Sequence record: NC_006883.2
Length of the DNA: 64,000 bases
Strand: one strand, 5' to 3'
Below, piece by piece: positions 2 to 48,622 of the stretch; positions within the stretch are counted from its first letter, which is position 1; each line of letters opens with the position of its first letter. Under the pieces are notes generated by a model. That model was not told the DNA's origin. It worked only from the letters and a program-made list of their open reading frames with translations, and ran no database searches. Position numbers and translations under genes: made by a program.

Positions 2-46
2 AAGTGGCACACATACACAAGAAAAGGGATTTAGACTCGCTATAAT
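2..46 (+). promoter_or_regulatory. Early-type promoter: AAGTGGCACA box (2-11) plus TATAAT (41-46)
   Basis: Box to -10 spacing matches the other copies at 4605, 5180, 6060, 6518 and 6767; ORF starts at 73. Confidence 0.7.
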
Positions 47-72
47 AGAAGAGTAAACAAGGGAACCACCCA

Positions 73-315
73 ATGCAAATTTCTTCTAAAGATGGGAATA
101 TGGTTGTTGACTTCTATCCAACGAAAGATGCCAACAACAAGGTGTATTCCGATAAGATATTGAAAGTATTATCTTTCAGAGGTGATACACAGAAAAAGAT
201 GGTGATCTCCAGAGATCATTTCTACTATCAAGTGAGAGAGTATATTCTCACTCACAAGTATAGAGTCACAGATGACGCTATGCTACCACAATTCATTTCC
301 TCGGAGGCAGTTTAA
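73..315 (+). CDS. Hypothetical early phage protein, 80 aa
   Basis: ORF track; follows the promoter; stop overlaps next start (TAATG). Confidence 0.75.
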   Translation: MQISSKDGNMVVDFYPTKDANNKVYSDKILKVLSFRGDTQKKMVISRDHFYYQVREYILTHKYRVTDDAMLPQFISSEAV

Positions 316-602
316 TGTTACCAGAGTACAGACCAGTTAAAGCATTGAATGACTTTGTTGATTATGTTTGGTCATTCTACGGAGAGCATGAGGACACTCT
401 TTACCCTATCAAGGGATTACAAAAGAGAGACATCTACAATGCCTTCTTTACCTACAAGGATAGAATAGAGAAGGGTGACATTGAGTACACCCATTACTCT
501 TGGGGTTTTGGTGATAGTTTAGATCGTGAGAGAGTAAGAGACATCATACTTGAGAATCCAAAATTTAAACAAGTAAACCGTTTCGATCTTTTAAACCAAT
601 GA
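315..602 (+). CDS. Hypothetical phage protein, 95 aa
   Basis: ORF track; translationally coupled on both sides. Confidence 0.75.
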   Translation: MLPEYRPVKALNDFVDYVWSFYGEHEDTLYPIKGLQKRDIYNAFFTYKDRIEKGDIEYTHYSWGFGDSLDRERVRDIILENPKFKQVNRFDLLNQ

Positions 603-823
603 GAACACCATCTAACCAACTCTTCGCAGACATCGACTTCTTAGTGGATGAACTGGGTATGAACGCTAATGAGTGTGATGATGTTTTACACGCTTGTGAT
701 GAGTTAGGAGGCATTAGTGCTGAATACTTCTGTGAGGAGTTTATCTTTGAAACTGGTGATCCTGATGACATTGATAGATTACACGATCCAAACTACCTTA
801 AAATCAACTGGGGTTTAAACTAA
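599..823 (+). CDS. Hypothetical acidic phage protein, 74 aa
   Basis: ATGA overlap with the upstream gene. Confidence 0.75.
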   Translation: MRTPSNQLFADIDFLVDELGMNANECDDVLHACDELGGISAEYFCEEFIFETGDPDDIDRLHDPNYLKINWGLN

Positions 824-865
824 TCCCCCAGTAACCTTTTACATCCACTTACTAATTTTTTTAAA

Positions 866-1075
866 ATGACCGAACTATTAAACAGTTACACATTTGAAGC
901 AAAGAAAATTGTTTACTATTCAGTAACAGTTGGTGCAGAAAATAAAACTGAAGCAAAGAGAATTGCATCTGATTTTGAACATTGCAAACATTATGAAGAG
1001 GTTGAGTATTGTGAAGGATATGAGTATAAGGTAGGTAAACTATTAGAAACAACTGATGAAAAATGGTTAACATGA
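866..1075 (+). CDS. Hypothetical phage protein, 69 aa
   Basis: ORF track; phage-like acidic composition. Confidence 0.7.
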   Translation: MTELLNSYTFEAKKIVYYSVTVGAENKTEAKRIASDFEHCKHYEEVEYCEGYEYKVGKLLETTDEKWLT

Positions 1076-1206
1076 TGGAACCATTAGACTCTAAGGTGTA
1101 TGAAGAGTTAAAACAAGCAACACCAACAATCAAGTATTATTTCCTTTATAATGAGAAGAACAATGACAGAAGAAACGAAACTGATCTGTGCATTAACCGA
1201 GGGTGA
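1072..1206 (+). CDS. Possible 44-aa protein (MMEPLDSKVYEELKQ...)
   Basis: Read manually; ATGA overlap with the upstream stop; overlaps the next gene by about 44 nt. Confidence 0.4.
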   Translation: MMEPLDSKVYEELKQATPTIKYYFLYNEKNNDRRNETDLCINRG

Positions 1207-1360
1207 GATTAGTACAATCTTACATTCATTACAAGTGTATGCACATAGGCATCAAACAACTGATGAGATTGAGAGAGTATTTGAAGAGTTAGAAGGTGTA
1301 GTTGACGTACATTATGATAAAACTTGGCAACAGGAGTTTATACCAAACTTCCATGATTAA
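1163..1360 (+). CDS. Hypothetical phage protein (start 1163 or 1151)
   Basis: ORF track 1151..1360. Confidence 0.7.
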   Translation: MTEETKLICALTEGEISTILHSLQVYAHRHQTTDEIERVFEELEGVVDVHYDKTWQQEFIPNFHD

Positions 1361-1568
1361 GATTGATTCATTAAGTAGAGCAATCGGATCAGTATTGATT
1401 GTTATATCTTACTTTGTTGTTTTAAATGTCTCTGCAACAATCGGAGCAGCAATGTATTTGGTGAGTCATTTTCTAAGTATGCCTTACTTTGTAAGGACGA
1501 AGGGGTGGGATGTAGTGGTAATGTTATCATTTTTAATTGTGATTAGCATTGCCAAGTTAATAGCGTAA
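1353..1568 (+). CDS. Small membrane protein, about 71 aa, 2-3 hydrophobic segments
   Basis: In-frame ATG at 1353 overlaps the upstream stop; hydrophobic sequence. Confidence 0.7.
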   Translation: MIKIDSLSRAIGSVLIVISYFVVLNVSATIGAAMYLVSHFLSMPYFVRTKGWDVVVMLSFLIVISIAKLIA

Positions 1569-1579
1569 ATGTTAAGAGA

Positions 1580-1608
1580 TTGACAAATAAGGGAAAAAGT
1601 ATTATAAT
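1580..1608 (+). promoter_or_regulatory. Consensus sigma70 promoter TTGACA-N17-TATAAT
   Basis: Perfect consensus, intergenic, upstream of ORF 1638. Confidence 0.85.
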
Positions 1609-1637
1609 TAGTATCAACCACCACCACCCTAAGTCCA

Positions 1638-1862
1638 ATGAAAGAAGTAACATTTACTAGCGAAGAGTTTGATTTAGTTTTTAATTTATTACAAGATCAT
1701 TTGGAAGACATAATGCAAGATGAGTTTTTCCATGTTGATAGTCATGAAGCAGCAGAGAAGGCAACACAATTAACTGTTGATAGTCTGCGAGCAATGAAGA
1801 ATTATATGAATGATAAGTTAGAGTCAGATTGTTTTGAGGGTGCAGCAGGTTTAACAGCATGA
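1638..1862 (+). CDS. Hypothetical phage protein, 74 aa
   Basis: First gene after the sigma70 promoter. Confidence 0.75.
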   Translation: MKEVTFTSEEFDLVFNLLQDHLEDIMQDEFFHVDSHEAAEKATQLTVDSLRAMKNYMNDKLESDCFEGAAGLTA

Positions 1863-2044
1863 GTGAAGAAGAACTTGAGCAGTTTGAAAAGGCACTTGAA
1901 ACTTTTATGGAGTATGCAAGTGTCGAAGAACTTAATTATTTGAGAAGAGAATCAACCCGAAAGTATAATCAGTCTTATTATGCACATAAGGCAAAGAAAC
2001 TTGGTGTTGACATTGATTATTATATGAAGGAGTTTGTAATATGA
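1859..2044 (+). CDS. Hypothetical phage protein, 61 aa
   Basis: ATGA coupling. Confidence 0.7.
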   Translation: MSEEELEQFEKALETFMEYASVEELNYLRRESTRKYNQSYYAHKAKKLGVDIDYYMKEFVI

Positions 2045-2244
2045 AATTTAATGATGAGGCAAAGTTAAACTTTGCATTGGAACATGTCTTACACTTAGAA
2101 GACTTATGGAAAGATGATTGGAATCCTGATATATCAATACATATCAGTAATTTAAAATATGAGATCATTAAAGAACAAACTAAGTTGCAATTAAAGAGAG
2201 AAGATGTTAAAATAGTAAGTGGTTCTCACAAGATAAATAAGTGA
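2041..2244 (+). CDS. Hypothetical phage protein, 67 aa
   Basis: ATGA coupling. Confidence 0.7.
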   Translation: MKFNDEAKLNFALEHVLHLEDLWKDDWNPDISIHISNLKYEIIKEQTKLQLKREDVKIVSGSHKINK

Positions 2245-2475
2245 ATGAAATATCTTTATATTATTGATTATTGGGTTCCTTTTCCTTCATCTGAATATGG
2301 TGGAGTTGTTAATGTAATTGCTGAAGATGACTCTGAGGCATTTGAGATATTATCTAAGGAAGAAGGATTTGATGACACTTACATTGAACGTATTATGCCT
2401 AATGTAATCAAGGCACAAAAACTAAAATTAGTTGATGATTACGATTCAAACATTATAGACGCATTTATTACCTAA
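2245..2475 (+). CDS. Conserved-type cyanophage hypothetical protein (YIIDYWVPFPSSEYGG), 76 aa
   Basis: ORF track; abuts the upstream stop. Confidence 0.75.
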   Translation: MKYLYIIDYWVPFPSSEYGGVVNVIAEDDSEAFEILSKEEGFDDTYIERIMPNVIKAQKLKLVDDYDSNIIDAFIT

Positions 2476-2482
2476 AAGGACA

Positions 2483-2665
2483 ATGGCAAAGAAAAAGAAG
2501 AGTACAACTTTCAGAGTTGACGGTTTAACTAATCGTGGTAAGGATGGACAATGGATTAAACAAACTGGTGGATTGTCTGAAGAGGCAGCACAAGAGTGGA
2601 TTGATAACAGAGTTAAACTTGATATAAGTTGCAACGAATCTGATTACAGAATAGTAGGTGAGTAA
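2483..2665 (+). CDS. Hypothetical phage protein, 60 aa
   Basis: ORF track; GGAC RBS-like sequence upstream. Confidence 0.7.
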   Translation: MAKKKKSTTFRVDGLTNRGKDGQWIKQTGGLSEEAAQEWIDNRVKLDISCNESDYRIVGE

Positions 2666-2826
2666 TGGAAAAACTTTATAGAATTGAAGAACTGCAATCT
2701 GCTGGATGGGAATTGATTGACGACAAGGCAGTTAAGTTGACCAGAGATCAGGCAAAGGCACGATTAGACGATGCAATCGCAGAAGGATTAAACCCTAACC
2801 GTCTTCGTGCTATTCCAGATGTATGA
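2665..2826 (+). CDS. Hypothetical protein, 53 aa (MEKLYRIEELQSAGWELID...NPNRLRAIPDV)
   Basis: Read manually; TAATG coupling; fills the gap between neighbours. Confidence 0.7.
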   Translation: MEKLYRIEELQSAGWELIDDKAVKLTRDQAKARLDDAIAEGLNPNRLRAIPDV

Positions 2827-3196
2827 ACCAATAGTAGATGATTACGTTAAGTGGACTAACTCTTTGGGGCAAGTTCATGAAGGTTGGGTATATTTTAAAG
2901 GTGACCCAGTTGATAATAAGAAACGTATTAAAGATGGGTGGAATCCTATTAGTCAGTATATTACTATTGAGATAGGAGTGAAACCTAAACCTCATTGTGT
3001 TTATTCGTCTGGGAAACCTATGAGGCACAAACTAATTCATATATTATTATTGTGTAATAGAGAGCATTGGGGAGAATTAGAATATATCAAGAATCGGAGA
3101 GGCACTCCGAGTGACGCAACGCCTGAGACTAATAAGAACCTTGACCCCTATGCTGGTTATAAGAGTCAAGAAGGAAGGTATGTAGATGTTCAATAA
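2819..3196 (+). CDS. Hypothetical phage protein, about 125 aa
   Basis: ORF track 2807..3196; ATG at 2819 couples to the upstream stop. Confidence 0.75.
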   Translation: MYEPIVDDYVKWTNSLGQVHEGWVYFKGDPVDNKKRIKDGWNPISQYITIEIGVKPKPHCVYSSGKPMRHKLIHILLLCNREHWGELEYIKNRRGTPSDATPETNKNLDPYAGYKSQEGRYVDVQ

Positions 3197-3213
3197 TTTC
3201 ACTACGCAAAATT

Positions 3214-3294
3214 ATGACCAATAAACTGAGAGTTGGACTCTATGTACTTGCTGTTCTACTGTTAGTTCGCAAGTTGTTAATCAGTATGTTCTGA
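3214..3294 (+). CDS. Possible 26-aa hydrophobic peptide (MTNKLRVGLYVLAVLLLVRKLLISMF)
   Basis: Read manually; single TM-like segment; fills an intergenic gap. Confidence 0.35.
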   Translation: MTNKLRVGLYVLAVLLLVRKLLISMF

Positions 3295-3331
3295 TGAGTA
3301 AATATAAGTATCAAGTAACCCTGAGAGAGTA

Positions 3332-3697
3332 ATGCAACCAACAGAGGATAACGTAGGAATATCAACGACTTGGTCTATTGTAGGACTGAGAAGTTTAAAG
3401 AGCAACGGGTTAGTTGATAGTGTGTTATATCAAGTGGTCTGTAGGGAACAAGTAGGCATAGGATTAAGTGCGACAATCAAGACGAATAGGTATAGTAATC
3501 ACTATGAATTGGAAGGAGATTCACCTACAATAGCACTTGCAGATTTATCAGAGAATAATGTAGTAGGATGGGTGAAGACAGGGTTAGGAAGTACAGAGGT
3601 TCAGAGGATAGAAAACAAGGTAGCACCAGCAAAAACTTTGTATGATTTTGATGAGAATAGAGAGATAAGAGAAGGGAATAGTCTTCCTTGGTCATAG
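3332..3697 (+). CDS. Phage protein resembling tail-fibre-associated accessory/chaperone proteins (TTWSI...VVGWVK...LPWS)
   Basis: Motif pattern recalled from cyanophage fibre-adjacent proteins; late-promoter-like GTAAATA at 3298-3304. Confidence 0.55.
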   Translation: MQPTEDNVGISTTWSIVGLRSLKSNGLVDSVLYQVVCREQVGIGLSATIKTNRYSNHYELEGDSPTIALADLSENNVVGWVKTGLGSTEVQRIENKVAPAKTLYDFDENREIREGNSLPWS

Positions 3698-3799
3698 AGA
3701 GATTCTAAGGGGGTTACTACTGAAGAACTTACAGGGCATTTGTAGTCTATTATACCATATTGTCTTGAAATAGTATTAAAATAAGGTTTTAAATACCTT

Positions 3800-3807
3800 T
3801 ATAAATA
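3800..3807 (+). promoter_or_regulatory. T4 late promoter consensus TATAAATA in non-coding DNA
   Basis: Exact gp55 consensus; no ORF downstream; AT-rich context could be chance. Confidence 0.45.
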
Positions 3808-3929
3808 TATCTTCGTGTTTTATAAGGATACTACCCTTGAGTATCTTAGTGTAACCTTGGTGTATGTTTTAAGGGGTTATAAGCATAAAAATACCTGATA
3901 AAACCACTCAGTCTTATGCAGGTTTAGCG

Positions 3930-3958
3930 AGCGTACCATGAGGCGAGCGATCTGTCAA
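3930..3958 (-). promoter_or_regulatory. Minus-strand sigma70 promoter TTGACA-N17-TACGCT
   Basis: tgtcaa at 3953-3958 and agcgta at 3930-3935 on + strand. Confidence 0.55.
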
Positions 3959-4028
3959 GTCTCAGGAATTTTTTTTCTCCATAAGGACACAAAGTCTCTT
4001 CGAGATCTTCGTGATTTATGCGTGGAAA

Positions 4029-4240
4029 ATCTAGTCGAGATATGCACATAATCTCGTGTTGACAATCTCGACTAGATCTGGTATAATATCACTATACAAG
4101 CAATCAATCTCGACTAGATTCTCATGTATTATCAACTAGATTATGAACTAGATTCTCATCTCGACGAGATCTATGACGCATCATCATATAGTACACATAC
4201 ACATCTAGATCATCATGACGAGATGTATGCACGTCGAGAT
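4029..4240. repeat. Iteron-like cluster of ATCTCGACTAGAT repeats (inverted and direct)
   Basis: Reverse copy 4029-4041; exact copies 4065-4077 and 4107-4119; 1-mismatch copy 4158-4170; partial copies 4131-4153 and 4203-4240. Confidence 0.85.
4059..4087 (+). promoter_or_regulatory. Consensus sigma70 promoter TTGACA-N17-TATAAT embedded in the repeats
   Basis: Perfect consensus; a repeat copy fills the spacer; no ORF downstream. Confidence 0.8.
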
Positions 4241-4256
4241 ACATCATATGTAACAC

Positions 4257-4285
4257 TTGCACAACGTCATCATGTGTGATATAAT
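4257..4285 (+). promoter_or_regulatory. Sigma70-like promoter TTGCAC-N17-TATAAT
   Basis: Near consensus with correct spacing. Confidence 0.6.
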
Positions 4286-4335
4286 GTAACACATAACGCA
4301 TTATAATGCACACACTTGTATGTGTCACACATGGG

Positions 4336-4399
4336 TGTGCAGGTTTATGAATTGGCACAAAGATCTGACTTAGGTGTGCCGCCTAAGAAACTGTATTAT
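4336..4399 (+). promoter_or_regulatory. Dyad TGTGCAGGTT-N4-AATTGGCACA, hairpin 4369-4387, -10 TATTAT (4394-4399)
   Basis: Same elements as other early promoters; box to -10 spacing is about 5 nt longer. Confidence 0.55.
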
Positions 4400-4439
4400 A
4401 GTCGATCCTCATCAGAAGTCATCCGACCTTGTGACAGTT
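4395..4439 (-). promoter_or_regulatory. Leftward early-type promoter: AACTGTCACA (4430-4439) plus TATAAT (4395-4400)
   Basis: Canonical spacing on the minus strand; imperfect GTCG/CGAC inverted repeat between. Confidence 0.65.
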
Positions 4440-4491
4440 TTATTTCTGGCACATAGGCATTAATTCTTGTTACCTAATAATATTTCATCGC

Positions 4492-4546
4492 AGGGGGAGT
4501 GTCGAACGTTGATCAAGGAGTTACATCTCTCCTACCTTCCTCTTTT
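4492..4546 (+). ncRNA. Candidate small structured RNA (three-way junction plus U tract)
   Basis: Stems AGGGGGAG/CUUCCUCU, GUCGA/UUGAU and AGGAG/CUCCU, then UUUU; no ORF; flanked by convergent promoters. Confidence 0.4.
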
Positions 4547-4555
4547 GTTATTCTT

Positions 4556-4600
4556 ATTATAGCAACACCAACACGGAAATCTACCTGTCTTGTGCCACTT
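4556..4600 (-). promoter_or_regulatory. Leftward early-type promoter: AAGTGGCACA (4591-4600) plus TATAAT (4556-4561)
   Basis: Canonical spacing; left half of the dyad 4591-4614. Confidence 0.7.
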
Positions 4601-4604
4601 TAAT

Positions 4605-4649
4605 AACTGGCACACTCTATACACCATTCGCTTCAATCTGGTGTATTGT
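4605..4649 (+). promoter_or_regulatory. Early-type promoter: AACTGGCACA, ATACACCA/TGGTGTAT hairpin, TATTGT
   Basis: Canonical spacing; ORF at 4679. Confidence 0.75.
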
Positions 4650-4678
4650 AAGAGAGTACAAAACAAATGAACATTTAA

Positions 4679-4930
4679 ATGATTCAATCAGAACTTTTGG
4701 GAAGGCACTTCTGGATCTCTCCTGATGGAGATTTTGCCAGTTGCCCCACCTTTGCAGATGGAAACCCTGATGTTACTAACACCGATTACCTTGAGTGTTG
4801 GGAGGGTGATGATCTTACCGTGCTTGAGTTTAATGAAATCATTAAGATCTATCAACGCCTTGTGCATCGCAAAGAATTTGGCATAGGAGGTTGGGGTTTA
4901 CCTGATTGGGCAAACAACATCTTTTCTTAA
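4679..4930 (+). CDS. Hypothetical early protein, 83 aa
   Basis: ORF track; downstream of promoter. Confidence 0.7.
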   Translation: MIQSELLGRHFWISPDGDFASCPTFADGNPDVTNTDYLECWEGDDLTVLEFNEIIKIYQRLVHRKEFGIGGWGLPDWANNIFS

Positions 4931-4935
4931 GATTT

Positions 4936-4969
4936 GAGGGGTTCACACACCCCTCTTTTTTGCTATACT
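4936..4969 (+). terminator. Hairpin GAGGGG/CCCCTC plus T tract, directly followed by -10 TATACT (terminator and probable promoter)
   Basis: 6-bp GC stem, TTTTTT, TATACT at 4964-4969. Confidence 0.6.
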
Positions 4970-4994
4970 TAATTTGTACACACGAATCATAGAA

Positions 4995-5177
4995 ATGAAT
5001 CTCTCCAAAGAAGATCTTCAGATTATCAACGAAGTTTTCTGCCAAGCATACTGCTTCGATCTCCCTGAGAAATGGGATGAGGAGGCAGAGGAGTATGATG
5101 GAGAAGAAGAAACCAATTTCAATTCTACCCGATTCTCTGAGGTTTGGGATAAGATCTCAAGGGAACAGGACAGATAA
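4995..5177 (+). CDS. Hypothetical acidic early protein, about 60 aa
   Basis: ORF track 4974..5177; ATG at 4995 lies downstream of the -10. Confidence 0.7.
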   Translation: MNLSKEDLQIINEVFCQAYCFDLPEKWDEEAEEYDGEEETNFNSTRFSEVWDKISREQDR

Positions 5178-5179
5178 CA

Positions 5180-5224
5180 AACTGGCACACATAAACCCCA
5201 TTCTACGGAGTGGGGTTTTATAAT
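5180..5224 (+). promoter_or_regulatory. Early-type promoter: AACTGGCACA, 11-bp hairpin with TACG loop, TATAAT
   Basis: Canonical spacing; AAGGA RBS and ATG at 5251. Confidence 0.8.
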
Positions 5225-5250
5225 ATTAGTATAAGTTTCAACCTAAAGGA

Positions 5251-5757
5251 ATGAACACCATCACACCAGAAATTCAGTATCAAAACCTCTATGAGCAACT
5301 CTATACCCTGTGTGCAGATCAGGGGTGGGGCGATCCTTTCAGTTATGCCCGTTCCCGTGAGATTCATATGGCAGGTATTTTGGGGCATCGTATTGCAGAT
5401 GACTACTCTGGGGCAGATGCCTTTGACGAAGAGGGAGGGTGTGAGTATAAAAGCACTATCGGTAAGAACATCAACGCCACATACAACGGAATCTCCGTGC
5501 AGGATACGTGGGAGGAGCAGGAGAGATACCTTATTGAGGATAAGATCGGCAAATACACTCATCACTATTATGCACGGTACGAAGGAGGAAAGATTGCAGA
5601 GGTATGGAAACTCAATGCTGCTGACGTGCTAAGAATAGCACTACCAAAGGCAAAGAGGCAGTACCCAAAGAAGAGAGCAGGGAACGCAAAAGATCCCCGT
5701 ATTGGTATTACCATCTCACGGGCAGAGATCACAACCCACGGTGTGCAGGTTATCTAA
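5251..5757 (+). CDS. PvuII-like PD-(D/E)XK endonuclease, 168 aa
   Basis: GADAFDEEGGCEYKS aligns by eye to PvuII GNDAVDNAGQEYELKS; C-terminal YARYEGGKIAEVWKL...KDPRI...HG resembles PvuII FAIYRGIAIEAIYRL...NNPKI...HG; similar length. Confidence 0.7.
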   Translation: MNTITPEIQYQNLYEQLYTLCADQGWGDPFSYARSREIHMAGILGHRIADDYSGADAFDEEGGCEYKSTIGKNINATYNGISVQDTWEEQERYLIEDKIGKYTHHYYARYEGGKIAEVWKLNAADVLRIALPKAKRQYPKKRAGNAKDPRIGITISRAEITTHGVQVI

Positions 5758-5801
5758 CTGGCACACTAAGGGGTTTACAGATCCCCTCAAAACTGTACAA
5801 T
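5742..5801 (+). promoter_or_regulatory. Early-type promoter: dyad TGTGCAGGTT-N4-AACTGGCACA, AGGGG/CCCCT hairpin, TACAAT
   Basis: Spacing within 1 nt of canonical; ORF at 5831. Confidence 0.8.
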
Positions 5802-5830
5802 AAGTACATACCAAACAACAGAGAGCATCA

Positions 5831-6061
5831 ATGCAACTCAACAAACTCGGCACTAATCAAACAGAGATTACACTTGCCGATGGTCACAAGGTATTTTTCT
5901 CCTACAACACTCCCGTAGCGTGTCAGACACCTGACTACGAATACTACAGAACAGAGCGTAAGTGGAGCGTAACAACATCACGCCACATCAGCAAGTGGTT
6001 AGATGGAGTTAATGCCACAGTAATGCCACAGGATTTCTTCAACACCCTGACAGCAAACTAA
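5831..6061 (+). CDS. Conserved-type small phage protein (FSYNTPVA...SVTTSRHI), 76 aa
   Basis: ORF track; motif common in phage early genes. Confidence 0.8.
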   Translation: MQLNKLGTNQTEITLADGHKVFFSYNTPVACQTPDYEYYRTERKWSVTTSRHISKWLDGVNATVMPQDFFNTLTAN

Positions 6062-6104
6062 CTGGCACACCATGAGTGGCAACTCCTCTCTGAGTTGCTA
6101 TTAT
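6060..6104 (+). promoter_or_regulatory. Early-type promoter: AACTGGCACA, GCAACTC/GAGTTGC hairpin, TATTAT
   Basis: Canonical spacing. Confidence 0.8.
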
Positions 6105-6125
6105 AAACCTATCAGACAAAGATCA

Positions 6126-6263
6126 ATGACTTTCAACCGCTTCGATGACTACCTCACTGATGATGCTATTCAAGCACTCATGGAGGATGCCATCTCTGAA
6201 ACACTTTCAGATGACGCAAAGAAAGATCTTGATTCTTATCTGAATTCTAAAAACGATTTCTAA
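6126..6263 (+). CDS. Small acidic early protein, 45 aa (MTFNRFDDYLTDD...)
   Basis: ORF track 6072..6263; start corrected to lie downstream of the promoter. Confidence 0.65.
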   Translation: MTFNRFDDYLTDDAIQALMEDAISETLSDDAKKDLDSYLNSKNDF

Positions 6264-6266
6264 CAA

Positions 6267-6401
6267 ATGACTCAAGTCACTTTGAAAAACACTAAGGCAC
6301 AAATCTTTGATGCGTTACAAAGTGTTAAAGATGTAAGAGAAGAAAGAAACGCTCTTGCAATCCTTAGTATAATACTATTCACAACCACCTGCCTTTTTTA
6401 A
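6267..6401 (+). CDS. Small protein with hydrophobic C-terminus, 44 aa
   Basis: Read manually; tightly packed with neighbours. Confidence 0.6.
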   Translation: MTQVTLKNTKAQIFDALQSVKDVREERNALAILSIILFTTTCLF

Positions 6402-6518
6402 ATGCAACCTTTAACAAATGAAATCTACGCAGCACTCAAAGAAGCAGAGCGTAGACAAAAGGAAGAGGTTCTCACATATGCACCACGCAGACGAACCTCA
6501 ATCTTAAACGATTATTAA
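6402..6518 (+). CDS. Small protein, 38 aa (MQPLTNEIYAALKEAERRQK...)
   Basis: Read manually; abuts the upstream stop; ends at the next promoter box. Confidence 0.55.
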   Translation: MQPLTNEIYAALKEAERRQKEEVLTYAPRRRTSILNDY

Positions 6519-6562
6519 ATTGGCACTCACCCCCTTCACAGGGGGTTTTTTATTGGTATAAT
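6518..6562 (+). promoter_or_regulatory. Early-type promoter: AATTGGCACT, ACCCCCT/AGGGGGT hairpin with T tract, TATAAT
   Basis: Canonical spacing; the hairpin also looks like an intrinsic terminator. Confidence 0.8.
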
Positions 6563-6587
6563 AAAAGAGTAATAAGCAATCATTAAA

Positions 6588-6767
6588 ATGAGCAGCATAC
6601 ACAACGAAGCATTAATGGAAACCTGCTTTGACGAAGCGTGGGAGCAGTTCCGTGTTCATAACAAGTTAACCCCTGATATGATGGAGGAGTTATGCTCAAT
6701 ATCAGTAGGCACAGTTCAGCATATAGAAAGAACCGCCCGTAAGATGTTTGAGAGTGCCAGTTCGTAA
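6588..6767 (+). CDS. Small early protein, 59 aa (MSSIHNEALMETCFDEAW...)
   Basis: Read manually; lies between two promoters. Confidence 0.7.
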   Translation: MSSIHNEALMETCFDEAWEQFRVHNKLTPDMMEELCSISVGTVQHIERTARKMFESASS

Positions 6768-6811
6768 ACTGTCCACCGACCCTCCATTCGTGGGGGGTTT
6801 TCCATTATACT
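6753..6811 (+). promoter_or_regulatory. Early-type promoter: dyad AGTGCCAGTT-N4-AACTGTCCAC, hairpin with TTCG loop, TATACT
   Basis: Canonical spacing; ORF at 6837. Confidence 0.75.
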
Positions 6812-6836
6812 ATTCTTATACAAACAAACATTCGTT

Positions 6837-7031
6837 ATGAGTTCTTATCCTACAACTGAAGTGAAGGTAAACGGAAGAGTATGGAAGGTTACACGACTCA
6901 GAACAGCACACGGAGCAAAGACTAATAAGTGGGTGAATCAGATTAAGGGAGGCAGCAGTAGAGTGAGGTGTGCTTCTAATAATGGAGTCACTTCTAACAC
7001 TAAGGCGACAGCACTTATGGACGTGCGTTAG
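6837..7031 (+). CDS. Small basic early protein, 64 aa
   Basis: ORF track; downstream of promoter. Confidence 0.7.
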   Translation: MSSYPTTEVKVNGRVWKVTRLRTAHGAKTNKWVNQIKGGSSRVRCASNNGVTSNTKATALMDVR

Positions 7032-7194
7032 GGGCAGTGCCGTTCGTTCGTGATTTGGCAGGGGTTCGTCGCCCCCGCCCCCCCGTTTAAAAATCACTAA
7101 CTACCCTAACCTACAAAGTGTTACGAAAGCGAGAACAATATTCCATCAAACTTCAAATTTTTTTTCGCTGTTAAAAAACGCCCACAAGGTCGAC

Positions 7195-7223
7195 TTGCAA
7201 AAAATACTTAAGTGATATATAAT
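7195..7223 (+). promoter_or_regulatory. Sigma70-like promoter TTGCAA-N17-TATAAT
   Basis: Correct spacing; overlaps the track ATG at 7222. Confidence 0.65.
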
Positions 7224-7245
7224 GGCAAAGACAAATACGATCATA

Positions 7246-7413
7246 ATGCAAAAAAATTCCGCAGAAGAAACATATGCTATAGAGGTTGATACTGTTACTG
7301 GTGAATATTTTGTTAGGATACCTGAGTGGATCGTAAATGATCAAGGATGGTTTGAGGATACTGAATTAAAATTCAAAACCGATAAAGACATTATTTTTAT
7401 GGAAGAAGCGTAA
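7246..7413 (+). CDS. Small protein, possibly AbrB/SpoVT-like (GEYFVRIPEWIVNDQGW), about 55 aa
   Basis: ORF track 7222..7413 with start moved downstream of the -10; pattern resembles swapped-hairpin regulators. Confidence 0.55.
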   Translation: MQKNSAEETYAIEVDTVTGEYFVRIPEWIVNDQGWFEDTELKFKTDKDIIFMEEA

Positions 7414-47164: not shown

Positions 47165-48622
47165 ATGAAAATATTAGGAACTGAAAGTAATTTAGGATCT
47201 CCTACTAATATTAGTAATGCTTCTGTTGTAAGGGTTTATAATAGTAATGCATCTAATATATTAGTAACTCAAAAAGATTCTGGTGGTACTGTTAAAGGAA
47301 GTTTTTTAGCAGCTACTGGTAAAGTTTTATATTGTGAAAAAGATTTTACAGATACATTAGAGGGTAGTTCTGACATTAAAGTAACGAAAGTTGCTTTTTC
47401 TCCCTATATGAATCTTATTAATGCAACTGGACCTGTAGCATCATATACTTTATCAGTATCTGCTACAGAAGTAGATGAAGATGGCAATTTTACTACTACA
47501 GTTTCAACCACTAATGTAGATGAGGGAACTACATTATATTGGGAATTATCTGGAAGTGGTATAACATCTGCTGATTTTTCATCTGGAGCATTAACAGGAA
47601 GTGGCACTATTTCTAGTGGTGGTTTTACTTTCTCTCATACACTTGACGAAGATGGAACTATAGAAGGAACAGAAACTATTACTATTAAATTATATAATGA
47701 TTCTGGTAGATCAAGTCAAGTTGGTAATACTATATCAGTTACTATTAATGATACATCTACAGTATCGGCAGGACAACAAGCATATACAACAGCAGGAACT
47801 TATAGTTGGACTTGTCCTTCTGGTGTAAGTGCAGTTTCAGTTGTTGCTATTGGTGGTGGAGGTGGTGGAGGTGCTACTGATACTGGTGGTAGTGCTGAAG
47901 GTGGACACGGTGGTACAGGTGCTGGACTTGGATATAAAAATAATATTTCTGTAACAGCAGGACAATCATATACTGTAGTAGTTGGTGATGGTGGAGCTGG
48001 TGGAGGTACTCCAGGTAATGATGGTCAAGATGGAGGAAATTCATATTTCATAGATGCAACTACTGTTAAAGGTGGTGGTGGTCCAGGTGGTAAACACGGT
48101 GGTAGGGGTCCAGGTGCTCAAACCCATAGTGGTGGAAGTTATGTAGGAGATGGTGGTGGTCAAGGTGGTGGTTCTGCTGCAAGTTCTTATTCTGGTGGTA
48201 GCCTTTCTGCTGGTGGTGGTGGAGCTGGTGGATATTCTGGTAGTGGTGATAGAGGTAGTAATTCCACTTCTTCTAATGGTGGTTCTGCTAATGGTGGTGG
48301 AGCTGGCGGTGGCGGTGGAAGTTATAACGGTGCTGGCGGTGGCGGTGGAACTGGAATATTAGGTGAAGGATCTAATGGAACTGGTGCTAATTTTGGTGGC
48401 GGTCCAGCTGATGGTGGTACTGGTGGATCTGGTGGTGCTACTGGTGGATCTGGTAATACTACTGGTACAGGTGGTGGTGGAAATGGTGGAGATTATGGTG
48501 GCGGTGGCGGTGGTGATAGTACTAGTGGTGGCGTAGGACCTAAAGGTGGTTCTGGTGCTGTAAGAATAATTTGGCCTGGAGATGTTAGACAGTTCCCATC
48601 AACGAGAACTGCTGATGAATAA
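47165..48622 (+). CDS. Virion-surface-like protein: small N-domain, Calx-beta-like domain, Gly-rich domain, 485 aa
   Basis: Y.LS.S.T.VDE.G...T..V.TT...GTTLYW...DF...EGTET; C-terminal GGGGG repeats ending GAVRIIW. Confidence 0.75.
   Translation: MKILGTESNLGSPTNISNASVVRVYNSNASNILVTQKDSGGTVKGSFLAATGKVLYCEKDFTDTLEGSSDIKVTKVAFSPYMNLINATGPVASYTLSVSATEVDEDGNFTTTVSTTNVDEGTTLYWELSGSGITSADFSSGALTGSGTISSGGFTFSHTLDEDGTIEGTETITIKLYNDSGRSSQVGNTISVTINDTSTVSAGQQAYTTAGTYSWTCPSGVSAVSVVAIGGGGGGGATDTGGSAEGGHGGTGAGLGYKNNISVTAGQSYTVVVGDGGAGGGTPGNDGQDGGNSYFIDATTVKGGGGPGGKHGGRGPGAQTHSGGSYVGDGGGQGGGSAASSYSGGSLSAGGGGAGGYSGSGDRGSNSTSSNGGSANGGGAGGGGGSYNGAGGGGGTGILGEGSNGTGANFGGGPADGGTGGSGGATGGSGNTTGTGGGGNGGDYGGGGGGDSTSGGVGPKGGSGAVRIIWPGDVRQFPSTRTADE

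Follow-up and report, generated by a model that had tools for sequence, protein, structure and literature searches.

A conserved dyad in register with the -10 hexamer in predicted early promoters of T4-like cyanophages

The 64,000-nucleotide (nt) stretch of sequence record NC_006883.2 analyzed here (the window) belongs to the Prochlorococcus phage P-SSM2, and carries within its first 7 kb ten sites at which the box AAnTG(G/T)CACA stands upstream of a TAnnnT hexamer at a distance of 29 or 30 nt. The element is real, strongly non-random and conserved, and the box is, as a rule, one half of an imperfect 24-bp inverted repeat (dyad). We regard this dyad as almost certainly a cis-acting promoter element. 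It probably defines a class of early promoters of T4-like cyanophages (Kyanoviridae) that lack a -35 element and whose upstream dyad would be served by a dimeric factor, a reading that we favor without holding it to be secure.

P-SSM2 is a T4-like cyanomyovirus (Kyanoviridae) and an ocean cyanophage. Bases 3700-7200 of the window are 100% identical to positions 65700-69200 of its genome (NC_006883.2), and the window therefore corresponds to genome positions 62001-126000, with window base 1 at genome position 62001. The P-SSM2 record contains no regulatory annotation.

The dyad and its register with the -10 hexamer

A first-pass annotation, made from the letters of the window, had listed boxes ending 30-31 nt before a -10-like hexamer. 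Every listed box is present in the sequence, and the reported distance is the same as ours, having been counted from a 9-mer instead of the 10-mer AAnTGnCACA. From the end of the 10-mer, the gap to TAnnnT is 29 nt for the boxes at 2, 4605, 5180, 6060, 6518 and 6767 on the + strand and at 4439 and 4600 on the - strand; it is 30 nt at 5756 (+) and at a tenth site absent from the earlier list, the leftward box 4345->4336 (-), whose TATAAT lies at 4305->4300. The 6767 box is weak (6/10 match), the distal half being the good one there. When one mismatch at most is allowed in the box, the window contains eight composites with TAnnnT at 29 or 30 nt, as against a mean of 0.27 and a maximum of 2 in 300 dinucleotide-preserving shuffles of the window. 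All eight fall within the first 7 kb, and the other 57 kb contain none.

The analysis was extended to 608 unique sites from the phage and IMG/VR sequences listed below, chosen solely by the proximal core and an in-register -10; their spacing is most often 29 nt (302 sites) or 30 nt (249), with a further 57 sites at 28 nt. These promoters are unlike host sigma-70-type promoters in that a logo of 302 aligned sites holds zero information across the -35 region and that, as previously claimed, a consensus -35 is absent at every window site, the best match being 5/6 at three of the ten. In these promoters, which would have no -35, the box keeps a fixed register with the -10.

The inverted pairs with a 4-nt spacer that had been reported at 4336-4359, 4430-4453, 4591-4614, 5742-5765 and 6753-6776 are all found, as are the weak distal halves at 5166 and 6046. 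Such a dyad with an invariant 4-nt spacer is the norm among the 608 sites: a distal core matching at 5 or more of 7 positions stands in the exact register in 453 (75%), and distal cores at shifted registers occur in at most eight. The consensus is an imperfect 24-bp dyad, TGTG(C/a)CA(G/C)TT-N4-AA(C/G)TG(G/t)CACA, with the half-site profile T-G-T-G-(C 80%/A)-C-A-(G or C)-T-T. If transcription starts ~7 nt past the hexamer, the dyad would span about -65 to -42, with its center at ~-53/-54.

The two arms do not behave as partners in a stem. With two variable positions and no co-variation between the arms, perfect complementarity is seen in 12 of 176 dyads as against 50.7 expected. At position 8 the arms are anticorrelated, agreeing in 110 of 401 sites where 183 would be expected, and when each flank-similarity cluster is reduced to one representative, 132 sites are hetero and 71 palindromic (Fisher p = 1e-5). 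Because the arms lack co-variation and perfect complementarity is avoided, we read the dyad as protein half-sites and not as a hairpin, in line with the dyad binding proposed in the first-pass annotation; the pattern argues for two half-sites of a putative protein, with selection against the perfect palindrome.

The element extends well beyond the window. A scan of the whole P-SSM2 genome (252 kb) found 20 modules. The 42.3-68.8 kb stretch has 18 of them, the other two precede the 'peptidase' gene PSSM2_150 and cobS, and there are none elsewhere. In Syn9, a Synechococcus phage of another genus, the same box occurs with 29-nt spacing at 48572, 51014, 53010 and 148756, and with 28-nt spacing at 127506, before the orthologous peptidase gene gp150. 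An exact-pattern scan of IMG/VR with TGTGCCANNT-N4-ANNTGGCACA returned at least 120 loci, with 191 dyads among the matches listed. On 375 dyad sides from these listed matches, the offsets to TAnnnT peak at 29 (121), 30 (60) and 28 nt (26) over a background mostly in single figures. Since ORFs (open reading frames) of 105 of the 120 listed loci match P-SSM2 or Syn9 by tblastn, the element is a family trait of cyanomyoviruses and not a peculiarity of P-SSM2; the comparison with relatives for which the first-pass annotation had called thus shows its conservation in Syn9 as well as in over 100 related contigs. As a separate observation, the box promoter of the peptidase gene keeps its orthologous position far from the early region (P-SSM2 genome 129362; Syn9 127506), and the large gene behind it has no Pfam match.

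Modules of the window and their predicted transcripts

The modules are as follows, in window coordinates and with predicted transcription starts.

2-46, + strand: promoter module with proximal half 2-11 (AAGTGGCACA), 29-nt spacer, TATAAT 41-46 and start ~53; the distal half (TGTGCCAGCT) lies at genome 61988-61997, just upstream of the window edge; lies wholly within the 3' end of the PSSM2_084 coding region; predicted to serve ORF 73-315 (PSSM2_085).
4300-4359, - strand: dyad 4336-4359 (TGTGCAGGTT-TATG-AATTGGCACA), 30-nt spacer, TATAAT 4305->4300, start ~4293; the right half (4350-4359) has no in-register -10 (34 nt).
4395-4453, - strand: dyad 4430-4453 (TGTGACAGTT-TTAT-TTCTGGCACA), 29-nt spacer, TATAAT 4400->4395, start ~4388.
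4556-4614, - strand: leftward arm of dyad 4591-4614 (TGTGCCACTT-TAAT-AACTGGCACA), 29-nt spacer, TATAAT 4561->4556, start ~4549; no ORF downstream, and the predicted transcript would include the conserved block 4481-4506.
4591-4649, + strand: rightward arm of the same dyad, box 4605-4614, 29-nt spacer, TATTGT 4644-4649, start ~4656; predicted to serve ORF 4679-4930 (PSSM2_099).
5166-5224, + strand: weak distal half 5166-5175, box 5180-5189, TATAAT 5219-5224, start ~5231; spacer hairpin 5193-5218 (-17.3 kcal/mol) with a T run at its end; predicted to serve ORF 5251-5757.
5742-5801, + strand: dyad 5742-5765, 30-nt spacer with hairpin 5769-5787 (TTTACA in its loop), TACAAT 5796-5801, start ~5808; distal half in coding sequence, and TAA stop 5755-5757 overlapping the box; predicted to serve ORF 5831-6061.
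6046-6104, + strand: weak distal half 6046-6055, box 6060-6069 overlapped by stop 6059-6061, hairpin 6079-6098, TATTAT 6099-6104, start ~6111; predicted to serve ORF 6126-6263 (PSSM2_101).
6518-6562, + strand: box 6518-6527 (AATTGGCACT), distal half absent, terminator-like hairpin 6529-6546 followed by a T run, TATAAT 6557-6562, start ~6569; predicted to serve ORF 6588-6767.
6753-6811, + strand: dyad 6753-6776 with good distal (AGTGCCAGTT) and weak proximal half (AACTGTCCAC), terminator-like hairpin 6778-6799, TATACT 6806-6811, start ~6818; predicted to serve ORF 6837-7031.

These modules stand at the end of a long series of small + strand ORFs of unknown function, and in the 42-69 kb region of P-SSM2 as a whole small genes tend to have one module each. 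Pfam gave no match for any of the eight module-served ORFs, and their PHROG matches are families of unknown function. ORFs 6588-6767 and 6837-7031, each behind its own box promoter, are both missing from RefSeq, and the former matches phrog_14136 (E = 2e-19). ORF 5251-5757 (PSSM2_100.1, phrog_35715) encodes an early-region protein of 168 aa conserved in at least ten of the contigs compared, in which a D...E-x-K stretch may resemble the PD-(D/E)XK nuclease motif.

A stem-loop lies within the spacer in five of the ten window modules (boxes 5180, 5756, 6060, 6518 and 6767), and those at 6518 and 6767 are also terminator-like by an independent scan, which places them at 6529-6546 and 6780-6797. 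The spacer folds to -7 kcal/mol or lower in 34% of sites; the share is 14% when spacers are shuffled and 4% among random 29-mers. Spacer G+C is 53% as against ~39% for the surrounding loci. The boxes at 5756, 6060, 6518 and 6767 share their first bases with the TAA stop codon of the preceding ORF. From the hairpins and the overlapping stops we derive the order of the unit: stop codon, box, terminator, -10, short leader, next gene. A terminator and promoter unit with no box is found at 4936-4969, where the hairpin loop contains a -35-like TTCACA 16 nt before TATACT; a -35-like hexamer in a hairpin loop recurs within the box modules at 5774 and 6535.

It had also been proposed that the dyad fires both ways. 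The proposal stands for the window insofar as three leftward promoters with a perfect TATAAT are predicted there, and falls short as a general rule, strong -10 hexamers being present on both sides in 3 of 104 dyad clusters across contigs. The three leftward dyad modules occupy the non-coding stretch 4290-4650, in which the 4591-4614 dyad would also drive PSSM2_099 rightward. In an alignment of P-SSM2 with two related contigs, L035 and L026 (74-79% identity), the two shared dyads (4430 and 4591) and both leftward -10 hexamers are invariant; the spacer downstream of the 4591 dyad is fully diverged in L026, and that side lacks a clear -10. Opposite a one-sided strong promoter, a weaker TAnnnT stands at 29-30 nt in 34 of 135 cases, where ~6 are expected. 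Overall, roughly one dyad in five has a weaker -10 facing the other way, and all five P-SSM2 dyads that lie within an upstream coding region have an antisense-side TAnnnT at 28-31 nt. Judged by these hexamers, divergent use is real, yet a minority feature.

The leftward transcript predicted from ~4549 contains a block (4481-4506, -) whose invariant core, CACTCCCCCTGC, is present in seven distinct phage contigs. In all seven the block lies ~95-105 nt downstream of a dyad on the same strand; the -10 is at the usual 28-30 nt register in six, and the seventh (L051) has a longer spacer and a sigma-70-type -35. The predicted RNA carries CACUCCCCCUGC. No ORF lies downstream of the block. Rfam and tRNA scans of 3500-7300, which include the block, were both negative, and consensus folding of the leftward transcript across three and then seven phages gave no supported structure. 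We regard the block as a candidate for an early small RNA whose C-rich seed would resemble an anti-Shine-Dalgarno sequence. Read on the other strand, its GGGGGAG could instead be the ribosome-binding site of a very short peptide.

Mechanism, rival explanations and the binding factor

The best reading of these sequences, in our view, is a dimeric activator. A dimeric DNA-binding protein, already there when the DNA enters the cell, would occupy the dyad and recruit or stabilize the host RNA polymerase on a -10-only core, replacing the usual -35 contact; the protein might be a conserved host factor or be carried in the virion. Since the site is nearly symmetric, one dyad could work with a -10 to its left or to its right, and a minority are flanked by one on both sides. 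The stop codon of the upstream gene, often with its terminator hairpin, would be packed into the module. We infer the protein binding, the activation, the early timing and the identity of the factor. In a more far-reaching version, which is conceivable but doubtful, a family-specific dimer delivered by the virion would bind the dyad, replace -35 recognition and free early transcription from host regulators, and the dyads would also fire conserved early non-coding or antisense RNAs, including the small RNA with the CACTCCCCCTGC core.

Several points weigh against the dimeric activator. The promoter activity of the P-SSM2 modules is predicted, and the early timing of the genes they serve is argued from position among small ORFs and from what is reported for Syn9. 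The three 5/6 matches to the -35 stand at 16-17 nt from the -10 (GTGACA at 4345-, TTTACA at 5756 and TTCACA at 6518). Avoidance of perfect symmetry is unlike what is expected of a simple homodimer. A scan for the strict dyad in one genome per prokaryotic species gave 37 loci, none in Prochlorococcus or marine Synechococcus, so that the host counterparts sought at the suggestion of the first-pass annotation did not appear under this pattern. No such module was found in the podoviruses P-SSP7 (whole genome) and Syn5 (first 12 kb), and the annotated DNA-binding and regulator genes of P-SSM2 include no convincing candidate for the binding protein.

Host RNA polymerase might instead read the box directly, through its alpha C-terminal domains or sigma, in an UP-like manner that needs no extra factor, the dyad then representing two contacts or two-way use. 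The proximal half would fall at about -51 to -42, the usual position of UP elements, a spacing as rigid as 29-30 bp fits direct contact, and early genes are active in many different hosts. Known UP elements, however, are A/T-rich, whereas the box contains G/C and is highly specific; moreover, the distal half persists at dyads with a single -10, podoviruses that infect these hosts lack the element, and the strict pattern was not found in the hosts. We consider direct reading unlikely. Less likely again is that the dyad is an operator at which a phage-made repressor closes early promoters of a plain, -10-only host type. The site is of the kind bound by dimers, three dyads lie within 280 bp of a non-coding control region, and marine picocyanobacterial promoters are often -10 only, but a repressor could act without any fixed spacing of 29-30 bp between its site and the -10, and that site would normally be expected over the core promoter and not at -65 to -42; the element, moreover, is found solely with in-register -10 hexamers.

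The modules could also be, above all, recombination cassettes, of the type of the promoter-early stem-loops (PeSLs), that shuffle small genes and whose sequence is kept for homologous exchange. As in PeSLs (PMC4122927), they set a promoter close beside a terminator between the small ORFs of a variable region, and in a single contig, L026, homology to P-SSM2 stops after the end of PSSM2_099 and restarts near the next module. Exchange would leave unaccounted for the dyad symmetry, the exact -10 register and the retention of 24 bp in distant phages despite diverging flanks; it is improbable as the explanation of the element, although a recombination role is compatible with a promoter role. Finally, the inverted repeat could act through its structure, as an RNA 3' stabilizer, a terminator of the upstream gene or an extruded DNA cruciform, given that a 10-bp stem with a 4-nt loop is possible and that the repeat is often at the end of the upstream ORF. 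What is conserved, however, is sequence and not pairing, as the shortage of perfectly paired arms indicates; single half-sites also occur as modules (window 6518; genome 57061), and where unrelated bacteria contain this pattern it is mostly a perfect palindrome, which the phage sites are not. The hairpin reading is already largely refuted, and we give it very little weight.

Returning to the dimeric activator, the distribution of the dyad bears on the origin of the factor. The early genes of T7-like phages also rely on the host polymerase. As judged by the scans, absence of the element from hosts and podoviruses weighs against a general host activator, without identifying a phage one. About six of the 37 loci in the host scan are probably mis-binned phage contigs: L137, L150 and L167 (several ORFs) and L161 (one ORF) carry P-SSM2 or Syn9 homologues, and L142 and L144 were judged to be phage by a phage-type dyad or an in-register -10 alone. 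Two orthologous matches in Nostoc were set aside as a coding coincidence, the dyad there lying inside an integrase gene and encoding VPVQQVAQ. Three other cyanobacterial matches are an ORF end in a Trichormus phage-like region, a site near integrase fragments and one non-coding site, and one further match lies in a Cyanobium metagenome-assembled genome (MAG). On the whole, we read the cyanobacterial matches as coding coincidences in an integrase gene or as falling in mobile regions. The host scan thus gives no evidence for a host regulon, although a regulon of weak sites may exist.

The early genes of generalist T4-like cyanophages are expressed in 12 of 12 resistant strains tested (PMC6708340), which is compatible both with a conserved host factor and with one supplied by the phage. 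Taken with the absence of the dyad from hosts and podoviruses, this expression leads us to lean toward a factor brought along by the phage. Candidates for the binder were rejected in three cases: PSSM2_151, annotated 'DNA binding protein', is a pyrimidine-dimer glycosylase; the 'transcriptional regulators' of phrog_385 have no Pfam, NCBIfam or PDB match above threshold, and read like a zinc-ribbon protein that has lost its cysteines; and for an Ogr-like activator, no small ORF with a CX2CX22CX4C zinc finger was found in P-SSM2 or Syn9.

Two observations from the host scan concern other genomes. In the Trichormus MAG (L141:4620-4712), the phage-type dyad at an ORF end in the phage-like region is followed after 29 nt by TATAGT and then by a 101-aa ORF, which may be the same architecture in a filamentous cyanobacterium, or chance. 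In Burkholderiales and other MAGs (L136:150-326, L153:3759-3833, L140 and L157) the dyad sequence occurs in 51-nt tandem repeats, on contigs that are high in G+C and unrelated to cyanophages.

Relation to known systems and neighboring promoters

The core of the finding has probably been published already. Doron and colleagues reportedly described in 2016 a novel element that is unlike host promoters and controls early genes in Syn9 and P-TIM40, and this early element is said to be abundant and conserved among T4-like cyanophages. The present element is likewise conserved and abundant in genomes and metagenomes of T4-like cyanophages, as its occurrence in P-SSM2, Syn9 and at least 120 IMG/VR loci indicates. 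Because the small-ORF region of Syn9 carries the same module, the P-SSM2 element is very likely the published one; in the citing literature examined we found no quotation of the published Syn9 early-motif sequence. If the two are identical, the main point is not new, and what is added would be the rule for the half-sites, the terminators nested in the promoter, divergent use and the lack of the element in hosts and podoviruses. Possible additions to what was published are the strict dyad and register, the position-8 rule, the nested terminators, the conserved leftward promoters and the podovirus and host absence.

Cyanomyoviruses lack alt, modA, modB, motA and asiA, and a 2010 review records that their early promoters were then considered sigma-70-like (PMC2984593). 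Three described systems share features with the box modules. Like PeSLs, the modules are compact units between the small ORFs of hyperplastic regions, five of the ten in the window combining a promoter with a stem-loop, but PeSLs have a sigma-70-type -35 and -10, 17 bp apart (PMC4122927), whereas the box modules have no conserved -35; the box-less unit at 4936-4969 is such a unit. The position of the stem-loop differs as well, being upstream of the promoter in PeSLs and between box and -10 in the box modules, which have an upstream dyad in addition. The middle promoters of T4 that depend on MotA/AsiA are similar in that a phage box replaces the -35 and a sigma-70-type -10 is kept (PMC5780444), and different in that the MotA box is at ~-30 and forms no dyad, and in that cyanomyoviruses are without motA and asiA (PMC2984593).

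The third system comprises the late promoters of P2-like phages. The P2 dyad is centered near -55, as compared with the -53/-54 that we infer for P-SSM2. The P2-like promoters served by Ogr/Delta/B are poor in -35 and have an upstream dyad, TGT-N12-ACA, bound by a phage activator, and one dyad can serve divergent promoters, as do PP' and PO' of Smp131, which share the same coordinates (PMC3931495). The P-SSM2 dyad, in contrast, is TGTG-N16-CACA and spans 24 bp, and therefore is not of the Ogr type; furthermore, P2 promoters fire late, with an activator synthesized in the course of infection. The P2-type late promoters and the PeSLs are the nearest analogues in how they work, but the element belongs to neither class, since defining features are missing.

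The core TGGCAC is identical to that of the sigma-54 -24 element. A sigma-54 promoter was nevertheless rejected, as TGGCAC-N5-TTGC has 0 matches on both strands of the window and the box is ~40 bp too far upstream. The hosts are not known to have sigma-54, and the resemblance is coincidental. Half-site frequencies match none of the consensus sequences of CRP, FNR and NtcA (TGTGA-N6-TCACA, TTGAT-N4-ATCAA and GTA-N8-TAC, respectively, partly after PMC3037559), and the consensus sequences of CIRCE, the DnaA box, LexA, sigma-54, CRP, FNR and NtcA were all rejected on comparison by eye.

T4-like cyanophages are among the most abundant viruses of the main photosynthetic bacteria of the ocean, and the known T4 devices for redirecting the polymerase (alt, mod, motA and asiA) are all absent from them. 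The dyad sequence, its register and the predicted starts, including the leftward ones with no gene, provide concrete probes for finding the factor. In contigs of uncultured cyanophages, the module also offers a simple genomic marker of transcription units of the early type, and cyanobacterial genetics would gain a compact promoter.

Promoters of other types are predicted close to the box modules. A perfect sigma-70 consensus promoter at 4059-4087 (TTGACA, 17 nt, TATAAT, with TG before the -10) is surrounded by six or seven copies of a 13-nt repeat, ATCTCGACTAGAT, in both orientations (3995-4230), an arrangement that resembles an operator array. L035 retains the promoter, and L100 has the repeats as well. 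PSSM2_098 (4124-4279), built largely of these repeats, is perhaps not a true gene. A 26-nt block (3783-3808) that borders the 1-kb non-coding region on its left is invariant in three divergent phages and contains the T4-type late-promoter motif TATAAATA (3800-3807), of which exact copies are too rare for a contrast between this region and the remainder of the genome. Another perfect match to the sigma-70 consensus promoter (TTGACA, 17 nt, TATAAT) lies at 1580-1608, before ORF 1638-1862 (PSSM2_090), among small ORFs otherwise served by box promoters.

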